Below, piece by piece: positions 5,462 through 56,056 of a stretch of 64,000 nt of DNA; the stretch's first letter is position 1, and each line of letters begins with the position of its first letter. The notes under the pieces were generated by a model. The model was not told the DNA's origin. It was given only the letters and a program-made list of their open reading frames with translations, and made no database searches. The position numbers and the translations under genes were made by a program. Source of the stretch: Saccostrea echinata. Lineage: Eukaryota. The stretch spans positions 15,686,001-15,750,000 of the forward strand of contig NW_026889779.1 in the NCBI RefSeq assembly GCF_033153115.1, read 5' to 3'.

Positions 5462-8064
5462 TCATTTTACATCAATTTTGGTTACATGAGGGCCTCCAGA
5501 CGAATTATCCCCCGGCTTCGTTTTTGTTTGAGTTTTTACTGTGCCATTCTTTATACTGTCCTTGTTGTTGTCTGAGTTATCAACATTTGCATAAATTGGA
5601 TCTTCTGCATGCACTGTTTTATCGTTGTCTACAACAGACTTGACCTCGCTATTTTCCTTTTCTTTTTTCCCATCTCTTTTCTTGAATTGAGCAACTCCTT
5701 TGTAAAGTAGGGGTCCATCTTCATGCAACAATAGGCTAGGCCAAACAACATATTCAATGAGGTCACCAGATCTTGTGTATGCCCTGTACATCTCCATGGA
5801 ATCGGTGCTAGTAACCATATACACAGGCGGATCCTGAAGTGCCATCATCCAGCAGAGGCGTGTACAAAGTTTAAAAAAGTCATTGGCATGTTTACAGTTC
5901 TCCAGTTGGTTCACAGCAATTCCTAATTCTTCTTCAGCCGTTGTCTGATCTTTAATGACTTTATATGGAAGGATCTAAAGATAATATGTAGAAATATAGG
6001 ATTGTTAATTTGTTCTTTTTATCCCTGAACAACAAATCTGTTCAATATCAAAATGTACTAAAATTAATTTGTCCATTTAAAGGACAGAGGATACAAACTT
6101 TTATAAAATATCATAAAAATAACAACCAAAATCATGTTTATATAAATAACAAATGAAAAAGTTTGTATAGATTAATATGGGTGGTTGGAGAAAAGTAGAA
6201 TTTTGAACATCATAAAAAGTTTACAATTTCTTAATATTTTATGAATTAAATATTTGCATTGNNNNNNNNNNNNNNNNNNNNNNNNNNNNNNNNNNNNNNN
6301 NNNNNNNNNNNNNNNNNNNNNNNNNNNNNNNNNNNNNNNNNNNNNNNNNNNNNNNNNNNNNNNNNNNNNNNNNNNNNNNNNNNNNNNNNNNNNNCATAAT
6401 ATGGTCTTACATTACCTTTAAAGCTTGACTTAGAGTGATTTCGCAATGTCTCCTGATAAAATCTCGGCATTTTCTGTCCAATTCGATTGCCATTTCCTTA
6501 ACAAAAAATGAATAGATGATCTCCAATAATTTTAATAATGCAGGCTTGTTGGAGAATTAACCTGCTTTTTATCATATTACTTGAATTTCCTGGACTATCT
6601 CTTGTTTATTTATACACTTACTCCAACATTTTCGTTGTGAAAGGAGACCGCATCCTTGACGTGTTTTAACTGCTCCGCTGCCTTTTTCTTGCATTCTTCA
6701 TACGTTACCTTTGGTTAAAGGGAGAACGAAGAACATTTAATAAAACACACTACATAAGATAGTATTTACATAATCTCAATGGATTTAACCATGAAAAAAA
6801 TCGTATTAATTTGTAATTCGAATTCTCAGACAATTAATTGCAGAGTTGAAAGACCAATTTCCTACAGTATATGGAAGAAGATAGCGACACCTTAGCAAAA
6901 TTATATAGAAACTTGATGACAACGATGTCCATTTCTTCTTCCGACGTTTCCTTTGGGAATTTTATCGTTTGCTTCAATTCCTCTGCCGCATCCGTCCATT
7001 CGTTGTCGTACAATTCAGAGAACTTCTCTGCCAACTTACTAGGTCGATTCTGGTCGCTAAGATCTGCTATGGCAGGATTGTTTGATTTTAAACGGGCACC
7101 TGCTACTTCCGATATCCTGAAAAAGGCGGATGTTAGATGGAGGTAAGAAGACACGTTTTGGTTTTTGAAATGGACATTAAAATTTTCATATCTGAAATTG
7201 TAGACTTCTTGTGGTCCGCACAATTTAAAAAGTTTGTTTACAAACACGACATTTGCTCTCAAATATACACAGATTCCTTTCACTATCTCAATTTATAATT
7301 TCTAAGGTCAGACGACACGTTTCTCAATACTATAATGTTTCCCAAAAATTGTTATTGATGGAAGTATTGCTATATATACTTTAACAAGTTTCCTGGCCAA
7401 AATATTTTTTAGGTACATTATATCAAGCATTTGTGCAAGATTCCAGAGGATGGTATTTCCTACATATTATCCTATTATCAATCCTTCGGCGTATATATAC
7501 ATTTTTAGACATTTTGAAAACAATGGTAGTAAATCGCAGGATTACTAACTAGGTATATTATTATATATTATTATTATTGTTATTATTATTTTTATTAAGA
7601 GATACAAAGCAATGTGTCGTCAGACCTTAACATTCAGAAACTGCTGCATAAATACTTTACTTATTCAAAATATCTTGGCGTTGTTTTTCAAAACTTGAGA
7701 GCTGCTGTTTCATTGTTATCAGTCCGTGGGTTGACTGTGAACTTCCATCCTACAGAGTTAAGTATAATATCAGGTATATTCACTATAGTTTTAACACGAC
7801 TGGGTTTTTTTTTCTCCGATAAATAAAATTCACTTTTCCTTATTGTGAATTATGACAATTGTATACCTTTTGGTGATGTTGGATAAATTCCTGCAAAGCT
7901 TTGACATCGTCCACGGATAATGATTTCTTGCCGTCTTTGTACTCACTCAAGACGTTGTTGAGTTGTTGGTAAGGGTCTCTGGGCGGACGGGGTCCATCAG
8001 AAGTGCCTTTAGGTTGACTCGGAGAACTCCCATTTTGACTGACACCACTCCCCATTTTATCCAT
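5462..8064 (-). CDS. Mitochondria-eating protein (Mieap/SPATA18) C-terminal-domain protein, ~394-397 aa, bivalve-type paralog
   Basis: Phase-consistent GT-AG exons: (8064 or 8055)-7867, 7749-7661, 7116-6891, 6708-6622, 6496-6416, 5974-5462. Family motifs NPAIADLSDQNRPSKLAEKFSELYDNEW, LCWMMALQDPP and YRAYTRSGDLIEYVVWPSLLLHEDGPLLYKGVAQ. An N-gap lies in the last intron. Confidence 0.85.
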
Positions 8065-8823
8065 CCGATAGTCCCTGTATATATATACATATATAAACTT
8101 CCAGCAGAGACGGATACAAACACAATAGAAATATATACTAGTACCTGGTGATGTATCACCTACCATTATATGCATGGACATCTGTAGTTCATGACATCTA
8201 ACATCGATTCTTAAAAATCTGCTTTCGGTTTGGCAGTAAGAATGCTATATTTACATTTTTTAAATATTACCAAGGTGGAACGCCTGACCTGGAATTTATA
8301 GTGCCATGTTGTTCGTTCAATAAAAAGGAAACCGTGGCATTACTATCGAGGTGCTGTTAGTTGAGTGTTTCCTTGCATCACCATTCTCATTGCAATATGT
8401 CACAAGGTTTGTTTAACAACATAGTCATTTAAGCTCATATCTGCTTATTTGATGGCGTATCACAATAAATCATTTAATCGTGTCTAGTACTTTCGTTTTA
8501 AAAAATTAACATCCCTGTTTAACACTATTAAGTTGAGTAGTAACCGAGGAAGTATTGTTTAATTGGACCAAGTTTCCGAATGAACAATTTAACCAAAGCG
8601 TCTAATATTAATTAATACTTCATGATTAGTTTTCTGACCATTTAAGGTAAACATGAAAATTAAAGAAGATGGGCAAAAAAAGGCGAGCGAAGTGCCTATA
8701 GTGCGACAAACATGAAGATGAAAAATTAAATCTCATAATAACAAAATTTTCTTTGATATTTCATCTAAACTCAAGGCATACTTTATGTAAAATATCCTAA
8801 ATTTGCAAAAATCTCGCAAAGAT

Positions 8824-8901
8824 CATGGCCGCAGGAACCGTCTGAAAATGTATGGCTGTGCCCCCCCCCCCCCCAAACTGAATATGCTTCCTACGGGCCT
8901 G
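8824..8901. mobile_element. Short MITE (CATGGCCGTAGGAA...TTCCTACGGGCCTG family)
   Basis: Imperfect TIR; flanks aagat/aaggt (5-bp TSD, 1 mismatch). Related ends at ~12265, 22079-22307 and ~48578. Confidence 0.65.
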
Positions 8902-9695
8902 AAGGTTGAAATTATTTGCCTATGAAATAGCATACTAAAGAGGGCAAAAAGGATAATTTTCTCATACTTTAACACATTTTTTCGATACGAGTGGGTCTTT
9001 GCTCCATATTTTTGAAAGTTTACCCCCAAAGTTTGCGTAAAAATATACATTTTTCCGTTAACAAAAACATTGAGCAATGACCCACTATACCTTGAAAATA
9101 CACTTTCATGACACAGCATTTGCATTTTTCCGAGAAATAGAAGTTCATTTAGTCAAGGGCCATATCACAAACATGATTTAAATGCCACTATTCATCAGGA
9201 GCTGTTTTAACGTAGTGGGTAGCGTGTTAGTCTCAAAGGAAAATGATACTCAGGATTTTTATTGCTAGGGTTCGAACCCCAAGAATACCACGGTGACATT
9301 ATTTTTTCAATAACAAAATAATTTTTGCCGAGAAAAATTTCCTCAAAAAAGTTTTGTTTATCATGATTTCTTATATATATCTGAAGCTATAGGCATTCTG
9401 CGCACCTTGTTTACCCATCTCATTTCTCGAATCAACTAGATAGACCTTACAGACTACATGTATACATGTTCCCTCTTGCATATTTAGAAAAGTATTTAGA
9501 ATTTGGGAAAAAATAATCAAAATCGTAGATGTTACAGTGTAATTCGTGTTATTTCATTCATCATTTTCATGTTGTCAGCACAGATCTGATTATTAAAAAC
9601 TAGTGCCGTACTTAATGAGTGACACTTTAAAAAAAATGTAGGTTGGATAGAAAATACAATATATTATTGTACTTTTGCTCCCCTTTTAAATACAG

Positions 9696-12029
9696 AGGCT
9701 ACCTCGTGGTTTTACCACCTTCGTAAGTCACTAAACAATCTAATAGAAATTTTCATCTTCAAAGAAGTTAATATGTACAAATTAATAAGCTGACAAACGA
9801 GTAAGAGAGAATTTAAATTAATACATTTCGACCACATTAATTAATTGTTTATTGTTTTCTGTCAACAGGTCGAGTGTCAAAGACCGATTCCCTCTTGGTC
9901 ATGGCCATTGACTTCGGAACAACCTATTCTGGATACGCCTTTCAATTTAGACATGACTACGAATCAGACAGGATTGGAAGTATTTTTGCAAACACGTCTT
10001 GGGTTGCAGAGGGTGGAAATGGCCTAATGTCTTGGAAAACACCAACCACCTTGCTTCTGAATCCAGACGACAGTTTCAACTCTTTTGGTTACGAGGCTGA
10101 GGAGGTGTACCAGGAGCTGATAGAAAACGAAGAACATCATGACTTCCATTACTTCCGCCGATTCAAAATGATGCTTCACAACAAAATGGTACAAAAATGG
10201 TGCAGAGCATGAAACGTCATTTTATCATATTTCATATCCAAAGTTTAATTGTGCAAATATCAAAGCATAAAAAATGAAAACTCGCATTTTTATATTACCA
10301 AGTTGATAACTGCATACGTTTCATCGTTTTTGATGCATGTATAATGAGTTCAAGTTTAATGTCATCTCTTTATCTATATTTAAAGATAATGAACCGTGAT
10401 GTCATTATAGAAGATTCAGGTGGTCGTGGATTTCCAGCTCGTACAGTGTTCAGACATTCCATTGACTACCTGAAAAAGCATTTCTTCAAAACTATTGAAG
10501 AACGTGCACTAAACTTAGAACACAAAGACATCCAGTGGGTCCTCACAGTTCCTGCAATATGGAATGAACCCGCCAAACAATTCATGAGAGAAGCTGCAGT
10601 GGAGGCAAGTGACTGACAATTAAATTTTATTTGCCATTTCAAATTAATTTTTACAAGAAAGAAAGAGATAACGTTTTGTGATTTTGTGATTCAGGCGGGA
10701 ATACCCTCAGATAATCTGCAGTTGGCCCTTGAACCTGAAGCAGCCTCTTTGTTCTGTAAATATGTTCCAGCGGAGAAGCAGTCTGATGAAGACGGACAGA
10801 ATATGAAAATAGTTCCATTTAGCATCGGGACTCGGTACATGATTCTTGATCTTGGTGGTATGTAAAAAAACAATCTGTTAATAAGAGAAAACATACACGC
10901 CAATGAATTTGATAAGGTATTAAATTCGAATTCATATGTACATTATACATTTTCAGGTGGAACCGGTGACGTCACAGTTCATGAAGTTGTAGATGAGAAT
11001 TCCCTACGGGAAATCAACGTAGCCAGTGGGGGTGCATGGGGAGGGACGAATGTGGATAAGGCATACTACAACATGCTTAAATCTATCTTTGGTGAGGATG
11101 TTCTTATGAAGTTTAAAACAGAAAGACGAACGGATATGTTAGAGTTTCAGAGGGATTTTGAAATGAAAAAGAGACATATTCGAGATAAATTGGGACAAAA
11201 CACTCGACCCGTTATCATCTCTGTCCCAGCACTGCTTTCTGAATATGTAAGAGAACTAAAAGGCATGAGCTTGCAAGATATCGTGGCAAACTCGGAGTTT
11301 GCTGACAAAATAAAAATAAAACCAGGGAACAAACTTGCAATCGCTAGAGAATTAATGGAAACGCTTTTTGATGATCCTAGGGAACAAATCGTAACACATG
11401 TTCGAAACATTCTGGAAAATCAAGAAAATGAAAACAGAATATCTGCCATTCTGATGGTTGGTGGATTCTCCACATCCAATATAATAGTGGATGCAGTGAA
11501 ACAGGCGTTTCCCGAGCTTCGCGTTGTAGTTCCACCGGAGCCTGGTTTAGCCGTTGTGAAGGGAGCTGTGTTATGTGGACATGCCCCGTTGACTATCTCT
11601 TCGCGCGTTTGCAAATATACGTATGGAGTTGCTGTGTACGACAATTTCGATGAAAATAAACACCCATTGGAAAAAAGAGTGGAGCATGAAAACGAGGTTC
11701 TATGTAAGGATGTCTTCAGTATGTTCATTCAGGCTGGTCAAAGTGTTGATGTCAATAAAAGTGTTGACGAATCATACGACGTACCAAAGCCACACGCTCC
11801 AGTGTCTCTACAAATATATGCGACCCCCGATAAAAATCCCCTGTTTACGACAGACGAACACTGCGAGATGCTTGGTAGAATCATTATCAAACCTCCAGCG
11901 AGTGGATGGCAAAAAGGCGCGAAAATAAAGATATCTATGAAGTTTGGAGGAACAGAGTTCGAGGTTCACGCCACAGACCCCCAGAATCCAGAGACAGTGT
12001 ACTCAACTAAATGTGATTTTCTGCTGTAA
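9696..12029 (+). CDS. HSPA12: Heat shock 70 kDa protein 12A/12B-like atypical Hsp70 (~600 aa; start exon not located)
   Basis: Exons 9869-10188, 10386-10604, 10695-10857, 10957-12029 (probable microexon 9696-9722). Motifs IDFGTTYSG, WVLTVPAIW, KQFMREAA, LEPEAAS, DLGGGTGD, LMVGGFS; no C-terminal lid or EEVD. Confidence 0.93.
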
Positions 12030-45384: not shown

Positions 45385-48300
45385 TTAAAGAGGAATTACT
45401 GAAGTTGTTTTAGAACTTTGTAAATTTGTAATTGACTTCTTTCCATCACCTTTGTCTTCTTTTTTACTTTTTAATGGGCCAATAAATGAAAGTACCACTG
45501 GAATCAAAAGAACTGAATGGACAAGACCGAAAAATATCACAAGAAACATCATTTGTCCAAAAGTTTTAAAGATGTAGCTGTTTGCAAATCCTAAAATAGA
45601 AACGCCTAAGAGGGTAGAAAATGCCGCGTTAAATATAGGTCCTCCGGATCTGTCTAAGGCGAGGTGAACTTTTGTGGCCCTGTCGTCTGCATCTACAGCA
45701 AGATAGGCGTGGCAAATATGGGCGCTAAAATCTACAGAGAACCCAACGGTCATGACTAGGTGTATCATGGTGATGGAACTCAGTGAAATGTCCCAGAAGT
45801 ACATAAAGCCGAATACCCCTAGTAGGATAGTAAACAGGGTAGCCCCGACAATAACGATCAGGGTTGGATGAGGCATGAAGACGATCGTGACGAAGATTAT
45901 TACAGCTATGGCAATTCCAACAGTTTGCAATGTACTTGGAAGAATTTCAACAAACTGTTCGAAGAAAATGAACGGATCAGCGTACACGATCATGGGAATC
46001 GCAGAATTTGAAGTCACTTCCCGCATGCGCAGCATCATCTTCCCTTGGTCATAAGAAGACTTTAAGCTATTGGTTTTCAAGTAGAATCTAGAAGAGGTAA
46101 TGCTCGTTCCAGCAGAATTTATCACCACATCACTAGCATACAGTGGCACATTTGTCAGGAACGTCTGGAGAGCAGCAATGAAGGCAGATTCAGAGGTGTC
46201 CACATACAGTGCAGATTGTTTAAAGGCAGATAGCCAGTTCAATTCAAATGCGTGATCTATGTCCTTGTCTTGTTTTGCTGTAGTAAGAACCGATGTTATT
46301 ACTCCTTGAGTCCAAGAAGATGAGTACGTCTGGGTTGTCTTGACATTAAACGACATAACGATCTCCGTTGTAAAGTAATTCTCAAGCCAGGTACTGTATT
46401 TGTAAAAGAAGGAGTCTTCCGTGACAAGGTTTGGAAGAGATAACCCTTGTTTAAGATGGACAGCACCAAAAACAGAGAATCCAAAGTAAATTACAAAAAT
46501 AAATATGATTATTATCTTCAGGGCTAGGTAGCTCATAATTTTTTGGATGAATCTTTTTGGATACTTCTCCAAAGGGCTGTCGACATCGTCTCGTTCTTTT
46601 GGTGGGTATCCAGCACATGCGTAAAGTGAGCATCCTGTTTTCCCATCTTTCCTCAGCGATTCCCTATCTTTTGTCCTTATACAGCATGCCACACAGTGTC
46701 GATTGCCTTTAATCCTCTTTTCATTGATTGCTATGCACGCAGAGAAAACAGTGATTTGATTGATGTAGCAAAAAAGTACTGCAACACCTGCAACAAAGCA
46801 AAACATATCACAAACAATAGTACATTTCTATGCATGTACTAGTTTCGAGCATATTTGTAGATTTTAATGACATTTAAATCGAAATTTAGAGATCAAAAAC
46901 TATTATACTTGTAATAAGTAACTGTGGCAACCATAACAATAGCCTACCAGTATAAATGCAGAAATTTCGGACGCTTAAGAAAACCGAACTTGCTCCGATC
47001 AGGAACGCCAGGAAGTCCGTGATGGAGGTGATTGTGATGGCGATTCCACTGGTCTTCATCATAAAGTAAATTCTGTCCGATACGCTGGAATTTTCTATAG
47101 TCTCAGCATCAGCAATACCAGACATTAAAATAAAGACATCGTCGATACCAATGCCTGTAGATTCAAACAATCATAAACGTAATTTGATAAATATTGAATG
47201 GAATGGTATGGAAGTTCAAAATAAACATGTGTAGTTTAAAATTCTAAACTGTCCAATGTAAGTATGGGATTAGTATTCTACCCTTGACATGATATTATAG
47301 GAACGCCAAGACAAAATCATGTACCCGTTAAGGATTACCTTGACAAGAATGGAGAAGCATATATGGAGGGGGGGGGGGGCACCCCAAAGGATTCTTTATA
47401 ATCCCACCTTTTAAAAAGATGTAATCAAACTTTTCAGGAGATTGAGAATATCTACTTTTCCTAAGTTGCATTTGCTTACCTATGATAAGGAAAGGCATAA
47501 CACTGACAATACTTATATACTTCACTCCAATAAGACTCAGTAAACCAAAAGAGGACACGATAGAGAGACCAGCCGCCAAAACACCTGCTTGACCTAAAAG
47601 ACTTCTGTCTGCTATGAAATTACAATTCTGTCTCGATGTGGCAATGGATGCATACGTCATCATTAGCGTCAACGTCAAAGCGAAGAAAAGAATGTCTCCC
47701 CCAATATTTTTCTCCAGTTCATCATCTAACGCACGAGAATAAGATGGAGCCAATTCAGAGACATTAACAACAGCACCCGAAATGGATTCAACAAAAGCTT
47801 TTTCCCATTCCTTAGAATTCGCTCCACTGAGGTAATAGGTTAGTTTCAGGCCCATGGCATATGTGAGTATTCCGCTAGAAGAAGATGCTCTTGCAAGAAG
47901 AAAACTTATAGAAGACTCCTTGAATATTGGGTATGTGATATTGTTTGCCAGCATCATCTGTTTGAAATCATTTGACAAGAAGATGTCCCCAGACACTACA
48001 CAATTGCCATTCTGTTTGGCACATATGTTAGCAAATGTTTTATTATTGACGGAAATTGAGTTGCGTACATAGTTGTCAACAGACGTGACATCATCTAAAA
48101 ATGCTGATGTCAGCATGTTTCCCCTGTCCTTTGTTAGAATGAGCACTTCTGTGAAGTCGGACGACTCTTTGTGCGAGTAGAAATCAGAGTTACTTGGATA
48201 CACATTCTTTAAAAAATCTCGATCTTTTGAAGCTTGGCTGTTTTCTGGTGTGTAAAATTTCTCAGATCCACTTTCTGTTTCAAGTCTAAGCATACCAAGG

Positions 48301-48425
48301 CCAAGGAGACAGTTAACAGAGATAGCAATAGCTAGAACTTTGACAGGATGCCGTTCCAGAAAGCGTCCATACAAACCAAAGACGCGACCTATCCTCTCTT
48401 CTTGTCTATGATAGCAGTCACCCAT
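45385..48425 (-). CDS. Patched domain-containing protein 3-like / Patched-related (PTR) RND-family sterol-sensing-domain membrane protein, 851 aa
   Basis: Exons 48425-47480, 47154-46948, 46787-45385 in phase. MPFLIIGIGIDDVFI, ITITSITDFLAF, VRNFCIY, VGFSVDFSAH, SYIFKTF; two 1+5 TM halves. Confidence 0.92.
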
Positions 48426-53620: not shown

Positions 53621-56056
53621 CTACTTTTTAAAGGAGTGGCGTACCTGATTCCAGAAAGACTCCTTCTCTCCTTCTGTTCCGCATGCATTCCAGTCTGCAT
53701 ACGTCACTGTTGAGAGAATTAATCGCAGTGAATTGGTGATGTTCTTTGGTTCAATTTTTTCGATCAAAATGACAACGAGAAGGTTATTTTGCTCCAAAAT
53801 AAGTCGATTTTGGGCAATGATTAGCTCAAAGTCGCACCATTTACTTCTAGCAAAACTGTTCGATAAAATAACAATGACTTTTCGGCTTTTTTGAATGCTG
53901 TTCACGATGTTATCTGCAATGAGCTTTCCTACTTGAAAGTCTCGGTAATGAATACAGAGATGATAGCCTTCCCTATCCTCTAATGTTGGAACCAGAATTT
54001 TATGCACAAATTCTTGATCTTCCTCTGCATAAATAACGAAGGCATCGTAATCAAAACCTTCCTGACCTGCAATTGCTTCATACCCATTCCTTCGAAATCT
54101 GTACATATATATCAAATACCGAATGTGCCATCGGGCCTTGTATATGATCAGGGTCACCATTAATACACAAATAAAACAGGAAGTTATGGCAATTACTAAA
54201 ACTTTAGAATATTCCGGAATAGGACACATTTCTGATTCTGTTAAATCCACAATAGCTTCATTCTTAAGATGCGACGGAGAAGCACATACTAATTTTTTAC
54301 AGGCTCTCCTCATTGGGCAAAGTTTCTGTCTATTCTCTATCATCCAGTCATGGAACCATTTGACCTCTTTGCAATTACAAGAGAACGGGTTGTGTTGGAG
54401 TTCTATGAATTCAATGTATTGTAGAAGATGTCCCGGGAATAATGTTTTGTTCACAACAACGATGTGGTTTTTAGAAAGGTCAATATACCTAAGAGTTGTT
54501 GAATTTCCAAACACATCGTGGCCATTCCATTCCACTATCATATTGGTTTGTAAGTAAAGCTGACGCAAGTTTGGCAAAACTCCGAATATATAACGTGGAA
54601 GATAATGCAGATTGCAGTCCACCAGGAACAACGATTCCAGATTTGTAAGAGGTCCCAGCATCTGTTTCATGACCGTTTCATTGTGTTTGAAAAGGTTTCC
54701 TGACAAATCCAATAACTGAAGACTAGGGCTGTTTTTAAATAAGGAGCCTGGGTAAAAGTTTGGAGGGTCAATAGAAAAATGGAATGCATTATCTCTAAAA
54801 TATAGTTGCTGAAGACTAGAACTATTAAATGCGTATTTTCTTATAAAATGGAGTTGTTCGGCCATTGTACTCAGGTGCAGTATTTTGAGACTTGGGAGCA
54901 TTGAGAATGTATTGGAGTAAAGTAACCGTATTGCATGGTTATCTAAATTCAAATACTCTAAATTATCTAGACATTTAAATTTATATTTCAGCGTTGAAAG
55001 TTTATTACTGTGCATGTCAAGCACCCTCAAGTTACTCAAATTAAAATCACAGAAAACTGGCATCCGAACAAACTCATTTTTTGAAAGATTGAGGGATACA
55101 AGATTCTTAAGAGAAGAAAAATTAGCTTTTCCAGAATTCAGCAAATTATCGTGTAGAGACAAATTCTGCAGCTCGAGAACTGGAGAGAAAAGGCCATCTT
55201 TAAGACTTGTAACATAACTGCTCTCTAATGTGATGTTAATGACCTTTGATCCTTCTAATCCCCGGAAGAATGTCGATGGTAGGTTAGAGAGATTAATTCT
55301 GTTTAATATCAGGGTATGTAGACTGCGACTTAGTGAATGAAAACTCCCTGCAAGACTTATCTTGTCTAATTTCCTTTCGTCTTCGATGTGGAGATGAGTT
55401 AGGTCTCTTAAATCGACAAAAGAATCATTAGCCAATGTCCTGATTCTGTTTTTGAGGAGGACAAGATTTTGTAGTTGTGAAGATTTCGTTAAAGGATATG
55501 TTAAGTTTATGAAAGTAGTCCTATTAATATGGTTCAATTTGTTATTGGACATGCAGAGATGTGTTATTTTAATTGGAAATCTTGGAATATAGGTCAGATT
55601 TAAATTGCTGCATATCGCTGACTTCGAGTAACACTGACATGGGTTATTTTCCGAACACTTCTCCCATGGAACGTCTTGAGGAAATGAGCAGCATTTGTGA
55701 TGTTTCACATAAAGTAAGACAAACAGGAAAGAAGCCTTTAACGTATACACCTAAAATTAAGAAAAAAATTCTTATAATAAACAGTTTTATCATCAATTTT
55801 ATATAGGTAAATGTAATAAACAACCTTAAAAGATTTTCTTTTATTTTTGAAATTGTTGCGTACTAGTAGTCGCGTAGTGTACTCATTTCCGCATAAACAC
55901 CCTAGCCTAATTAATCTGACTTTGAGTACAGTATTCAACCAAATGAAAGTCATCCTCCTTCTTAAAAATGGATTTATAGTAATTAATATTTTCAATACAG
56001 AAAAGGAAACGAAAATCTTAATCAACATTTGCAGGAAACACAAATCTTACCGCCAT
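53621..56056 (-). CDS. Toll-like receptor (single cysteine cluster type), ~711 aa
   Basis: Exon 1 56056-56051 (aaaaATGGCG|gtaaga) and exon 2 55750-53621 (ttttag|GTG). Signal peptide, LRRNT, many LRRs, LRRCT NPFSCNC, TM helix, TIR with YDAFVIY / LCIHYRDF / SKWCDFEL / FW. Confidence 0.95.

Follow-up and report, generated by a model that had tools for sequence, protein, structure and literature searches.

A head-to-head HSPA12 and Mieap-domain gene pair in the rock oyster Saccostrea echinata, apparently conserved as neighbours in other bivalves, with a predicted complex between the two proteins

Gene structure of the locus

We analyzed a 64,000-nucleotide stretch of the Saccostrea echinata genome, hereafter the window (NCBI RefSeq assembly GCF_033153115.1, contig NW_026889779.1, positions 15,686,001 to 15,750,000), in which a Mieap-domain gene and an atypical Hsp70 gene (HSPA12) are arranged back to back between positions 5462 and 12029. 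The observation made in the preliminary description, i.e., two intact spliced genes transcribed divergently, is confirmed, and the pair is tighter than first described. Exons were searched separately, whole-protein analyses used the database proteins, and the exon sets were then checked for translation into these proteins.

The Mieap-domain gene lies on the minus strand and has six coding exons, with all introns being GT..AG. Exon 1 (8064-7867) carries the ATG at 8064-8062, exon 2 (7749-7661) encodes the start of a long helix, and exon 3 (7116-6891) matches positions 1-44 of the Pfam MIEAP profile (PF16026) and carries the invariant motif NNPxIADLSDxNRPxKLAEKFSELYDNEWTD. Exons 4 (6708-6622) and 5 (6496-6416) are followed by exon 6 (5974-5462), which contains the stop codon and encodes the C-terminal half of the MIEAP domain (a small beta domain; profile positions 112-193, E 1.8e-10) and a disordered tail. 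The exon set translates exactly to a RefSeq protein of 397 aa (LOC133196438, here P0272). This protein scores 77.9 bits against the MIEAP profile, with a gathering cut-off of 27, on residues 120-322 and across profile positions 1-193 of 195. An assembly gap (N, 6262-6394) lies inside intron 5 (5975-6415). The S. cucullata orthologue (P0121), also used as a tblastn query, is colinear across the junction of exons 5 and 6 (..ALK|ILPY..), so no coding exon is hidden in the gap.

The HSPA12 gene lies on the plus strand and has five coding exons at 8397-8406, 9869-10188, 10386-10604, 10695-10857 and 10957-12029, where exon 3 has a GC donor and is followed by a GC-AG intron. Together they translate exactly to XP_061188700.1 (HSPA12A-like, 594 aa, here P0001). 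While the preliminary description placed the first recognisable HSPA12 coding exon at 9696 or 9869, the first coding exon is a 10-base exon at 8397 (ATG TCA CAA G, then a GT donor), which is the only ATG-Ser-Gln match found between 8001 and 9900. The two start codons are therefore 332 bp apart (8065-8396). The repeat-rich stretch previously placed between the genes lies in HSPA12 intron 1, where 8780-9330 is a dispersed repeat with more than 4000 first-look candidates in the genome and scored copies that are 85-87% identical. ARAGORN found no tRNA in this repeat.

The HSPA12 protein retains the motifs of an Hsp70/actin-fold nucleotide-binding domain. Exon 2 encodes the phosphate-1 motif IDFGTTYSG, while exon 5 encodes the phosphate-2 motif, lobe IIB, the adenosine motif, the C-terminal domain and the stop codon. 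The IDFGTTYSG, DxGGGTxD and VGGFS columns are invariant or nearly so, and the profile aligns to the nucleotide-binding domains of BiP and DnaK. Pfam HSP70 scores 30.9 bits (cut-off 20.6) on residues 156-422, but the match stops at profile position 350 of 599 and the protein ends ..KCDFLL, i.e., there is no canonical substrate-binding lid and no C-terminal EEVD. All named hits are "heat shock 70 kDa protein 12A/12B-like".

The 332-bp spacer is presumed from sequence alone to be a shared bidirectional promoter. It contains TATA-like runs and one loose ISRE-like site at 8322, while no heat-shock element was found in 7801-8700. A bacterial promoter scan of the spacer is irrelevant to an animal gene. 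Among the other pairs in this genome, two strict IRF/ISRE matches lie between the pair on contig C25 and none between those on contigs C57 or C30.

Clustering of the two families in the genome

The preliminary description could not exclude chance adjacency and proposed a permutation test across several bivalve genomes, which we have carried out within the S. echinata genome. In a permutation that keeps every cluster on its own contig, 6 cluster contacts within 20 kb were seen against 0.57 expected (p=5e-5), and 4 against 0.41 at 10 kb (p=8.5e-4). Two other expanded families, C1q (150 loci) and AIG1 (47 loci), have no locus within 20 kb of either family. Chance adjacency might be suspected because 80% of the Mieap loci and 46% of the HSPA12 loci lie on three contigs (C25, C56 and C30) that make up 9.5% of the genome. 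However, as the permutation accounts for this, chance is rejected within the genome at p<1e-3, and the accession order in other species described below also argues against it. We consider this explanation very unlikely.

There are four head-to-head pairs and one tail-to-tail pair of the two families in the genome, and pairs and mixed arrays are found at C57:6.81 Mb, C25:23.70 Mb, C30:3.46-3.48 Mb and C56:19.93-20.09 Mb. Such recurrence would be expected if the pair were a cassette that duplicates as a unit, with each HSPA12 matched to a cognate Mieap partner, as proposed in the preliminary description by analogy to paired NLRs. However, only 4 of at least 114 HSPA12 loci and 6 of 69 Mieap loci lie within 10 kb of the other family, and 20 further Mieap genes have no HSPA12 in the 6-7 kb upstream. 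A second HSPA12 query added only four weak loci, none near a Mieap gene. At least 90% of both families are unpaired, and they expand as same-family tandem arrays.

Trees could include 27 of the 69 Mieap genes and 5 HSPA12 genes of this genome, the HSPA12 tree being built with database proteins of other bivalves instead. Paired copies are not clades but are scattered in both trees. Paired Mieap genes need 6 changes on the tree against a shuffled mean of 5.5, while paired HSPA12 genes need 5, and starred branches force 5. The nearest in-genome relatives of the paired HSPA12 genes are unpaired. Furthermore, none of 10 long Mieap proteins, nor a 1015-aa HSPA12, holds a domain of the other family, i.e., no fusion was seen. 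The cassette model is therefore not supported, and we regard it as highly improbable.

Orthologues in other bivalves

Both genes belong to bivalve-wide orthogroups. The HSPA12 gene of the window sits in an orthogroup with Pinctada, Pecten, Mizuhopecten, Mya, Mactra and Mercenaria (SH-aLRT 98). The Mieap gene groups with C. virginica and other oyster sequences (97), while the join with the scallops (79) and with Tegillarca (65) is weaker.

Orthologues of both genes carry consecutive protein accessions in S. cucullata (XP_062594695 and XP_062594696-99, on one 1.24-Mb scaffold), Pecten maximus (XP_033743668 and XP_033743669) and Mizuhopecten yessoensis (OWF41867 and OWF41866, on one 899-kb scaffold). 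In Mactra antiquata, the HSPA12 orthologue, a second HSPA12 and a Mieap-domain gene form a consecutive run (KAL4230003, KAL4230004 and KAL4230005), and in Tegillarca the locus tags are six apart. These results suggest that the two genes are neighbours in other oysters, scallops and a clam. This is inferred from accession order alone, which carries no information on orientation or spacing, and in S. echinata itself the two adjacent genes do not have consecutive XP numbers. If the accession order reflects genome position, this particular pair is old and appears to have been kept together since oysters, scallops and clams diverged.

Predicted complex of HSPA12 and the Mieap-domain protein

Complex prediction supports binding of the two proteins. 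The ipSAE was 0.78, 0.79 and 0.79, against 0.11 for the best of three controls, the runs share at least 44% of their contacts, and the pLDDT of the partner is at least 64. This mark was reached by 51 of 78 solved complexes and 2 of 108 mismatched pairs, and on eukaryotes by 39 of 65 novel solved pairs and 2 of 126 unrelated pairs. However, 7 of 44 blind neighbour pairs also passed in the test of the method.

In the model, the Mieap protein lays three elements across the HSPA12 nucleotide-binding domain: the end of its long helix, the invariant loop NNPxIADLSD with the helix that follows, and its small C-terminal beta domain. The predicted contacts fall on lobes IA/IB and IIB of HSPA12 (residues 27-59, encoded by exon 2, 300-333 and 359-363), and the core of the predicted interface on the Mieap side is the exon 3 motif (interface residues 91-144). 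On the Mieap side, 20 of 47 interface residues are at least 90% conserved, against 19 of 219 elsewhere in the fold (Fisher p=1.2e-7). In contrast, the predicted HSPA12 interface is not more conserved than the rest of the protein (5 of 54 against 130 of 536), which sits oddly with an invariant partner motif.

The predicted arrangement resembles the way a nucleotide-exchange factor such as GrpE grips DnaK. GrpE chains are the best PDB matches of two Mieap models, but in the wide fold search with the second model long coiled coils filled the list and GrpE was not in the top 50. The look-alikes in the ESM Atlas are plant DUF641/GIL1 proteins, not GrpE. At sequence level there is no Pfam GrpE match, as MIEAP is the only relevant Pfam family at E<=0.001 for P0272, P0121 and nine other Mieap proteins.

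Interpretation of the gene pair

We consider it somewhat more likely than not that the locus is an ancient two-gene unit with a shared promoter, where an HSPA12-type ATPase and a Mieap-domain protein are transcribed divergently from the 332-bp spacer and the two proteins form a complex. In this view, the most likely role of the Mieap protein is a dedicated regulator of the HSPA12 ATPase cycle (nucleotide exchange or locking), or an adaptor, and its coiled-coil N-terminus would dimerise it or place it in the cell. Our analysis directly demonstrates the gene structures, their spacing, the recurrence within the genome and the orthogroups, while the neighbour status in other species is an inference from accession order. 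Binding and its geometry are known from prediction only, the shared promoter is presumed, and exchange-factor activity remains speculative. The interpretation in the preliminary description is thus partly supported: the adjacency is not chance and complex prediction supports binding, while duplication as a unit does not find support.

A possible but less favored alternative is shared regulation only, i.e., the two genes are kept together because a compact bidirectional promoter cannot be split without harming one of them, and the proteins act in the same stress or immune response without touching each other. The short distance between the start codons, the divergent orientation of four of five close pairs, the lack of conservation of the HSPA12 interface and the pass rate of blind neighbour pairs agree with this. 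Both families are the largest ancestral bivalve expansions and are discussed as damage-control genes, with no claim that they interact (PMC8382680). On the other hand, the complex score far exceeds that of the controls, the predicted interface falls on the invariant Mieap motifs, and the best PDB fold match is an Hsp70 cofactor, with the limits of the fold searches described above. In addition, independent pairs from different lineages of both families recur in the genome, which a single frozen promoter does not explain.

The function of HSPA12 is called "presently unknown" in a 2026 review, which notes that its expansion in bivalves is unexplained (PMC13580251), and Mieap/SPATA18 has no defined biochemical activity. 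No paper in the library we searched links the two families. The predicted complex gives a testable first partner for two protein families whose mechanism is unknown. A gene pair that appears to have been kept together, a confident predicted interface on the invariant Mieap motifs and a GrpE-like shape in the models together yield one concrete hypothesis, which would also explain why HSP70 and Mieap are the two largest ancestral gene expansions of bivalves (PMC8382680). A broader reading, which we consider doubtful although the evidence does not rule it out, is that the MIEAP domain is a diverged GrpE-like exchange factor or cycle regulator dedicated to HSPA12 ATPases throughout animals. Human Mieap/SPATA18 would then act through HSPA12A/B, and the joint expansion of the two families in bivalves would be the expansion of one chaperone-cofactor system.

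Comparison with known systems

In the DnaK-GrpE system (bacterial dnaK/grpE linkage, mitochondrial mortalin-GrpEL1), an Hsp70-type ATPase is encoded next to a protein with a long helix, a helical bundle and a small six-stranded beta domain. At this locus, the Mieap protein encoded next to the HSPA12 gene is modelled with a similar fold, with mixed support from the fold searches, and in our model contacts lobes IB and IIB of the nucleotide-binding domain. Human Mieap/SPATA18, a p53-induced mitochondrial quality-control protein, shares the MIEAP domain and has coiled-coil N-terminal parts. However, the gene in the window is not the SPATA18 orthologue. The best PF16026 matches in this genome lie on contigs C42 and C16, with no HSPA12 in the 10 kb examined there, and no link between SPATA18 and HSPA12 was found in the literature searched.

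Like vertebrate HSPA12A/HSPA12B and the bivalve HSPA12 expansion, which comprises tens of copies per bivalve genome, P0001 is an atypical Hsp70 with the nucleotide-binding motifs kept, no lid and no EEVD. It differs in that it belongs to a conserved, roughly single-copy orthogroup across bivalves rather than to a lineage-specific array, and in that it has a Mieap neighbour which, judged from accession order, appears to be fixed. Conserved bidirectional gene pairs of animals likewise have start codons under 1 kb apart, and they keep their neighbour relation over long evolutionary time, which for the present pair is inferred from accession order. Here, a physical interaction is also predicted, and the same two families pair up independently several times in one genome.

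Gene structures and family membership

The window corresponds to positions 15686001-15750000 of contig C30 in the 923-Mb Saccostrea echinata assembly (G000). A search with the HSPA12 exons, taken individually, returned a 100% identical RefSeq protein of S. echinata, P0001 (XP_061188700.1, "heat shock 70 kDa protein 12A-like", 594 aa), and a search with the S. cucullata orthologue returned P0272 (LOC133196438, 397 aa), the Mieap-domain protein on the same 36.2-Mb contig. When splice sites were tried around our exon estimates, one exon set was found for each gene that translates exactly to these proteins, and the database proteins were used for all whole-protein analyses. The Mieap-domain gene lies on the minus strand with exons 8064-7867, 7749-7661, 7116-6891, 6708-6622, 6496-6416 and 5974-5462, and all of its introns are GT..AG. 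The HSPA12 gene lies on the plus strand with exons 8397-8406, 9869-10188, 10386-10604, 10695-10857 and 10957-12029, where intron 3 (10605-10694) has a GC donor and is a GC-AG intron. The run of N at 6262-6394 is located in Mieap intron 5. As the S. cucullata protein P0121 reads ..SEALK|ILPYNV.. where the window has ..SQALK|ILPYKV.. at the junction of exons 5 and 6, no coding exon is missing.

The observation of two intact, divergent genes in the preliminary description holds, but the genes are closer than it reported. HSPA12 begins MSQG, and the only ATG-Ser-Gln match found between 8001 and 9900 is at 8397, followed by G and a GT donor. The start codons are thus 332 bp apart, and the stretch 8407-9868, previously taken for intergenic DNA, is intron 1. 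Within this intron, 8780-9330 is a dispersed repeat of about 430-470 bp with more than 4000 first-look candidates in the genome, of which the scored copies are 85-87% identical. The copy in the window carries an extra 78 bases (query positions 45-122) that the other copies lack, and ARAGORN found no tRNA in it. The spacer between the start codons has TATA-like runs and no heat-shock element. Two strict ISRE-like sites (GAAANNGAAA) lie between the head-to-head pair at 23.70 Mb on contig C25 (positions 7796 and 8161 of the extracted locus L002), while the spacer in the window has only a loose one at 8322.

P0272 matches Pfam MIEAP over the whole domain, at 77.9 bits against a cut-off of 27. P0001 passes Pfam HSP70, but only over the nucleotide-binding part of the profile. 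It keeps the phosphate-1, phosphate-2 and adenosine motifs and ends without EEVD.

Adjacency of the two families within the genome

To determine whether the adjacency could be due to chance, both families were mapped across the assembly. The PF16026 profile found 69 C-terminal Mieap exons and the large HSPA12 exon found 114 loci, while a second, divergent HSPA12 query found the same set plus four weak loci. These counts are inflated a little, since Mieap genes at C25:1.02-1.07 Mb and C25:6.36-6.42 Mb are identical in the tree, and HSPA12 loci mirror each other with near-equal scores in inverted order (also C25:45,741/62,775 and C25:7,417,022/7,401,305). This is either a large inverted duplication or a haplotig joined into the contig. 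HSPA12 arrays with pairwise equal scores at C41:1.19-1.25 Mb and C19:2.37-2.43 Mb are likely alternative haplotypes of one array. The best PF16026 matches in the genome (96 bits), likely the true SPATA18 orthologue, are present as near-identical copies at C42:3716435 and C16:29309980, and no HSPA12 was found in the 10 kb extracted at either copy.

Six Mieap loci lie within 10 kb of an HSPA12, and 18 lie within 50 kb. By tblastn there are four head-to-head pairs, namely the window, C57:6.809/6.813 Mb, C25:23.697/23.705 Mb and C30:3.464/3.479 Mb, and one tail-to-tail pair at C56:20.069/20.070 Mb, in addition to mixed arrays. We treated tandem arrays as single clusters and re-placed each Mieap cluster at random on its own contig. 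Within 100 kb, 7 contacts were observed against 1.44 expected (p=2.5e-4), within 20 kb 6 against 0.57 (p=5e-5), and within 10 kb 4 against 0.41 (p=8.5e-4). Of the two other expanded families used as controls, C1q (150 loci) and AIG1 (47 loci), none lies within 20 kb of either family. The two families also share contigs, as C25, C56 and C30 make up 9.5% of the genome but hold 80% of the Mieap loci and 46% of the HSPA12 loci.

The interpretation in the preliminary description is only partly supported by these data, as its proposal of a cassette that duplicates as a unit with matched partners is not supported. Most copies are unpaired, and 20 further Mieap genes extracted with 6-7 kb of upstream DNA have no HSPA12 exon there. 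On a tree of 26 Mieap genes of this genome, the six paired genes need six changes against a shuffled mean of 5.5, and on a tree of 119 HSPA12 sequences, the five paired ones need five changes, with starred branches forcing five. Arrays grow by same-family tandem duplication; for example, the tail-to-tail Mieap gene groups with its array neighbours. No fusion protein was seen among the proteins examined. The annotated HSPA12A-like protein P0387 of Crassostrea virginica (1015 aa) has two Hsp70-type halves, being either a tandem merge or a true double ATPase, but it holds no MIEAP domain.

Probable conservation of the pair in other bivalves

The HSPA12 gene of the window is not an array member. 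It sits in a clade (SH-aLRT 98) whose branching follows bivalve relationships, with Saccostrea, Pinctada, the scallops Pecten and Mizuhopecten, then Mya, Mactra and Mercenaria. The Mieap protein of the window groups with C. virginica and other oyster sequences (97), whereas its join with the scallop proteins P0279 and P0141 (79) and with Tegillarca (65) is weaker.

The accession numbers of these orthologues are consecutive. In S. cucullata, HSPA12 is XP_062594695 and Mieap XP_062594696-99, on one 1.24-Mb scaffold. The Pecten maximus proteins are XP_033743668 and XP_033743669, and those of Mizuhopecten are OWF41867 and OWF41866, and also XP_021371195-97 and XP_021371198-201, on one 899-kb scaffold. 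In Mactra, KAL4230003 (HSPA12, in the orthogroup) is followed by KAL4230004 (HSPA12) and KAL4230005 (Mieap), and in Tegillarca the locus tags are 024349 and 024355. In GenBank genome submissions, protein accessions follow the order of genes on the record. Therefore, these genes are very probably neighbours, although this is inferred from accession order and does not extend to their orientation or distance.

Predicted complex of HSPA12 and the Mieap-domain protein

Complex prediction with full-length P0001 and P0272 gave ipSAE values of 0.78, 0.79 and 0.79, while the best of three controls was 0.11. The mark was reached by 51 of 78 solved complexes and 2 of 108 mismatched pairs, and on eukaryotes by 39 of 65 novel solved pairs and 2 of 126 unrelated pairs. 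The runs share at least 44% of their contacts, and the pLDDT of the partner is at least 64. This supports binding but does not show it, and a pass does not say which family member binds.

On the Mieap side, the predicted interface comprises residues 91-144, 291-296 and 310-324, i.e., the invariant NNPxIADLSDxNRPxKLAEKFSELYDNEWTD stretch and the YRAYT/KGVAQ strands. Of 47 interface residues, 20 are at least 90% conserved among 40 family members, against 19 of 219 elsewhere in the fold (Fisher p=1.2e-7). On the HSPA12 side, the predicted contacts are 6-59, 146-154, 300-333, 359-363 and 431-439, which by the profile alignment to BiP fall in lobes IA/IB, in IIB and in the last helix of the nucleotide-binding domain. 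These residues are not more conserved than the rest of the protein, which we count against a family-wide fixed interface. However, the comparison includes buried core residues and is therefore not clean.

The AlphaFold2 model of P0272 has a mean pLDDT of 76, and above 90 over most of residues 121-330. It has a long helix (73-108), the conserved loop, a helical bundle and six short strands (279-325). Foldseek found nothing significant with this model, and T. thermophilus GrpE was rank 6 at E=1.1. A second model, of a Sinanodonta paralogue 29% identical (pLDDT 82), again gave GrpE at ranks 3 and 6 in its second look. However, in the wide search with this model a 72-residue helix drew hundreds of coiled coils, and GrpE was not among the 50 rows shown. 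For residues 79-333 of P0272 (exons 2-6), both the structure search and the feature search of the ESM Atlas pointed to plant DUF641/GIL1_IRKI_C proteins (TM 0.55 over 196 residues) and to unnamed fungal and ciliate clusters. The MIEAP fold may therefore be far wider than animals.

In the literature searched, no paper held both HSPA12 and Mieap, SPATA18 and HSPA12 co-occurred only in gene lists, and Mieap and GrpE co-occurred in one paper. HSP70 and Mieap are listed as the largest ancestral bivalve expansions and linked only by general function (Regan et al., 2021; PMC8382680), and a 2026 review states that the function of HSPA12 is unknown (PMC13580251).

Collectively, our results show that the pair is real, intact and non-random within the genome. 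It is apparently old, and the neighbour relation in other species is inferred. A physical HSPA12-Mieap complex is predicted with good controls, and a GrpE-like mode of action is possible.

Two other genes were recognized in the window, both on the minus strand. A single 709-aa open frame at 53624-55750 with leucine-rich repeats and a TIR domain is a Toll-like receptor gene about 42 kb from the pair. Two long open frames at 45388-48425 have Patched/sterol-sensing domain matches and are probably exons of one Patched-family gene.
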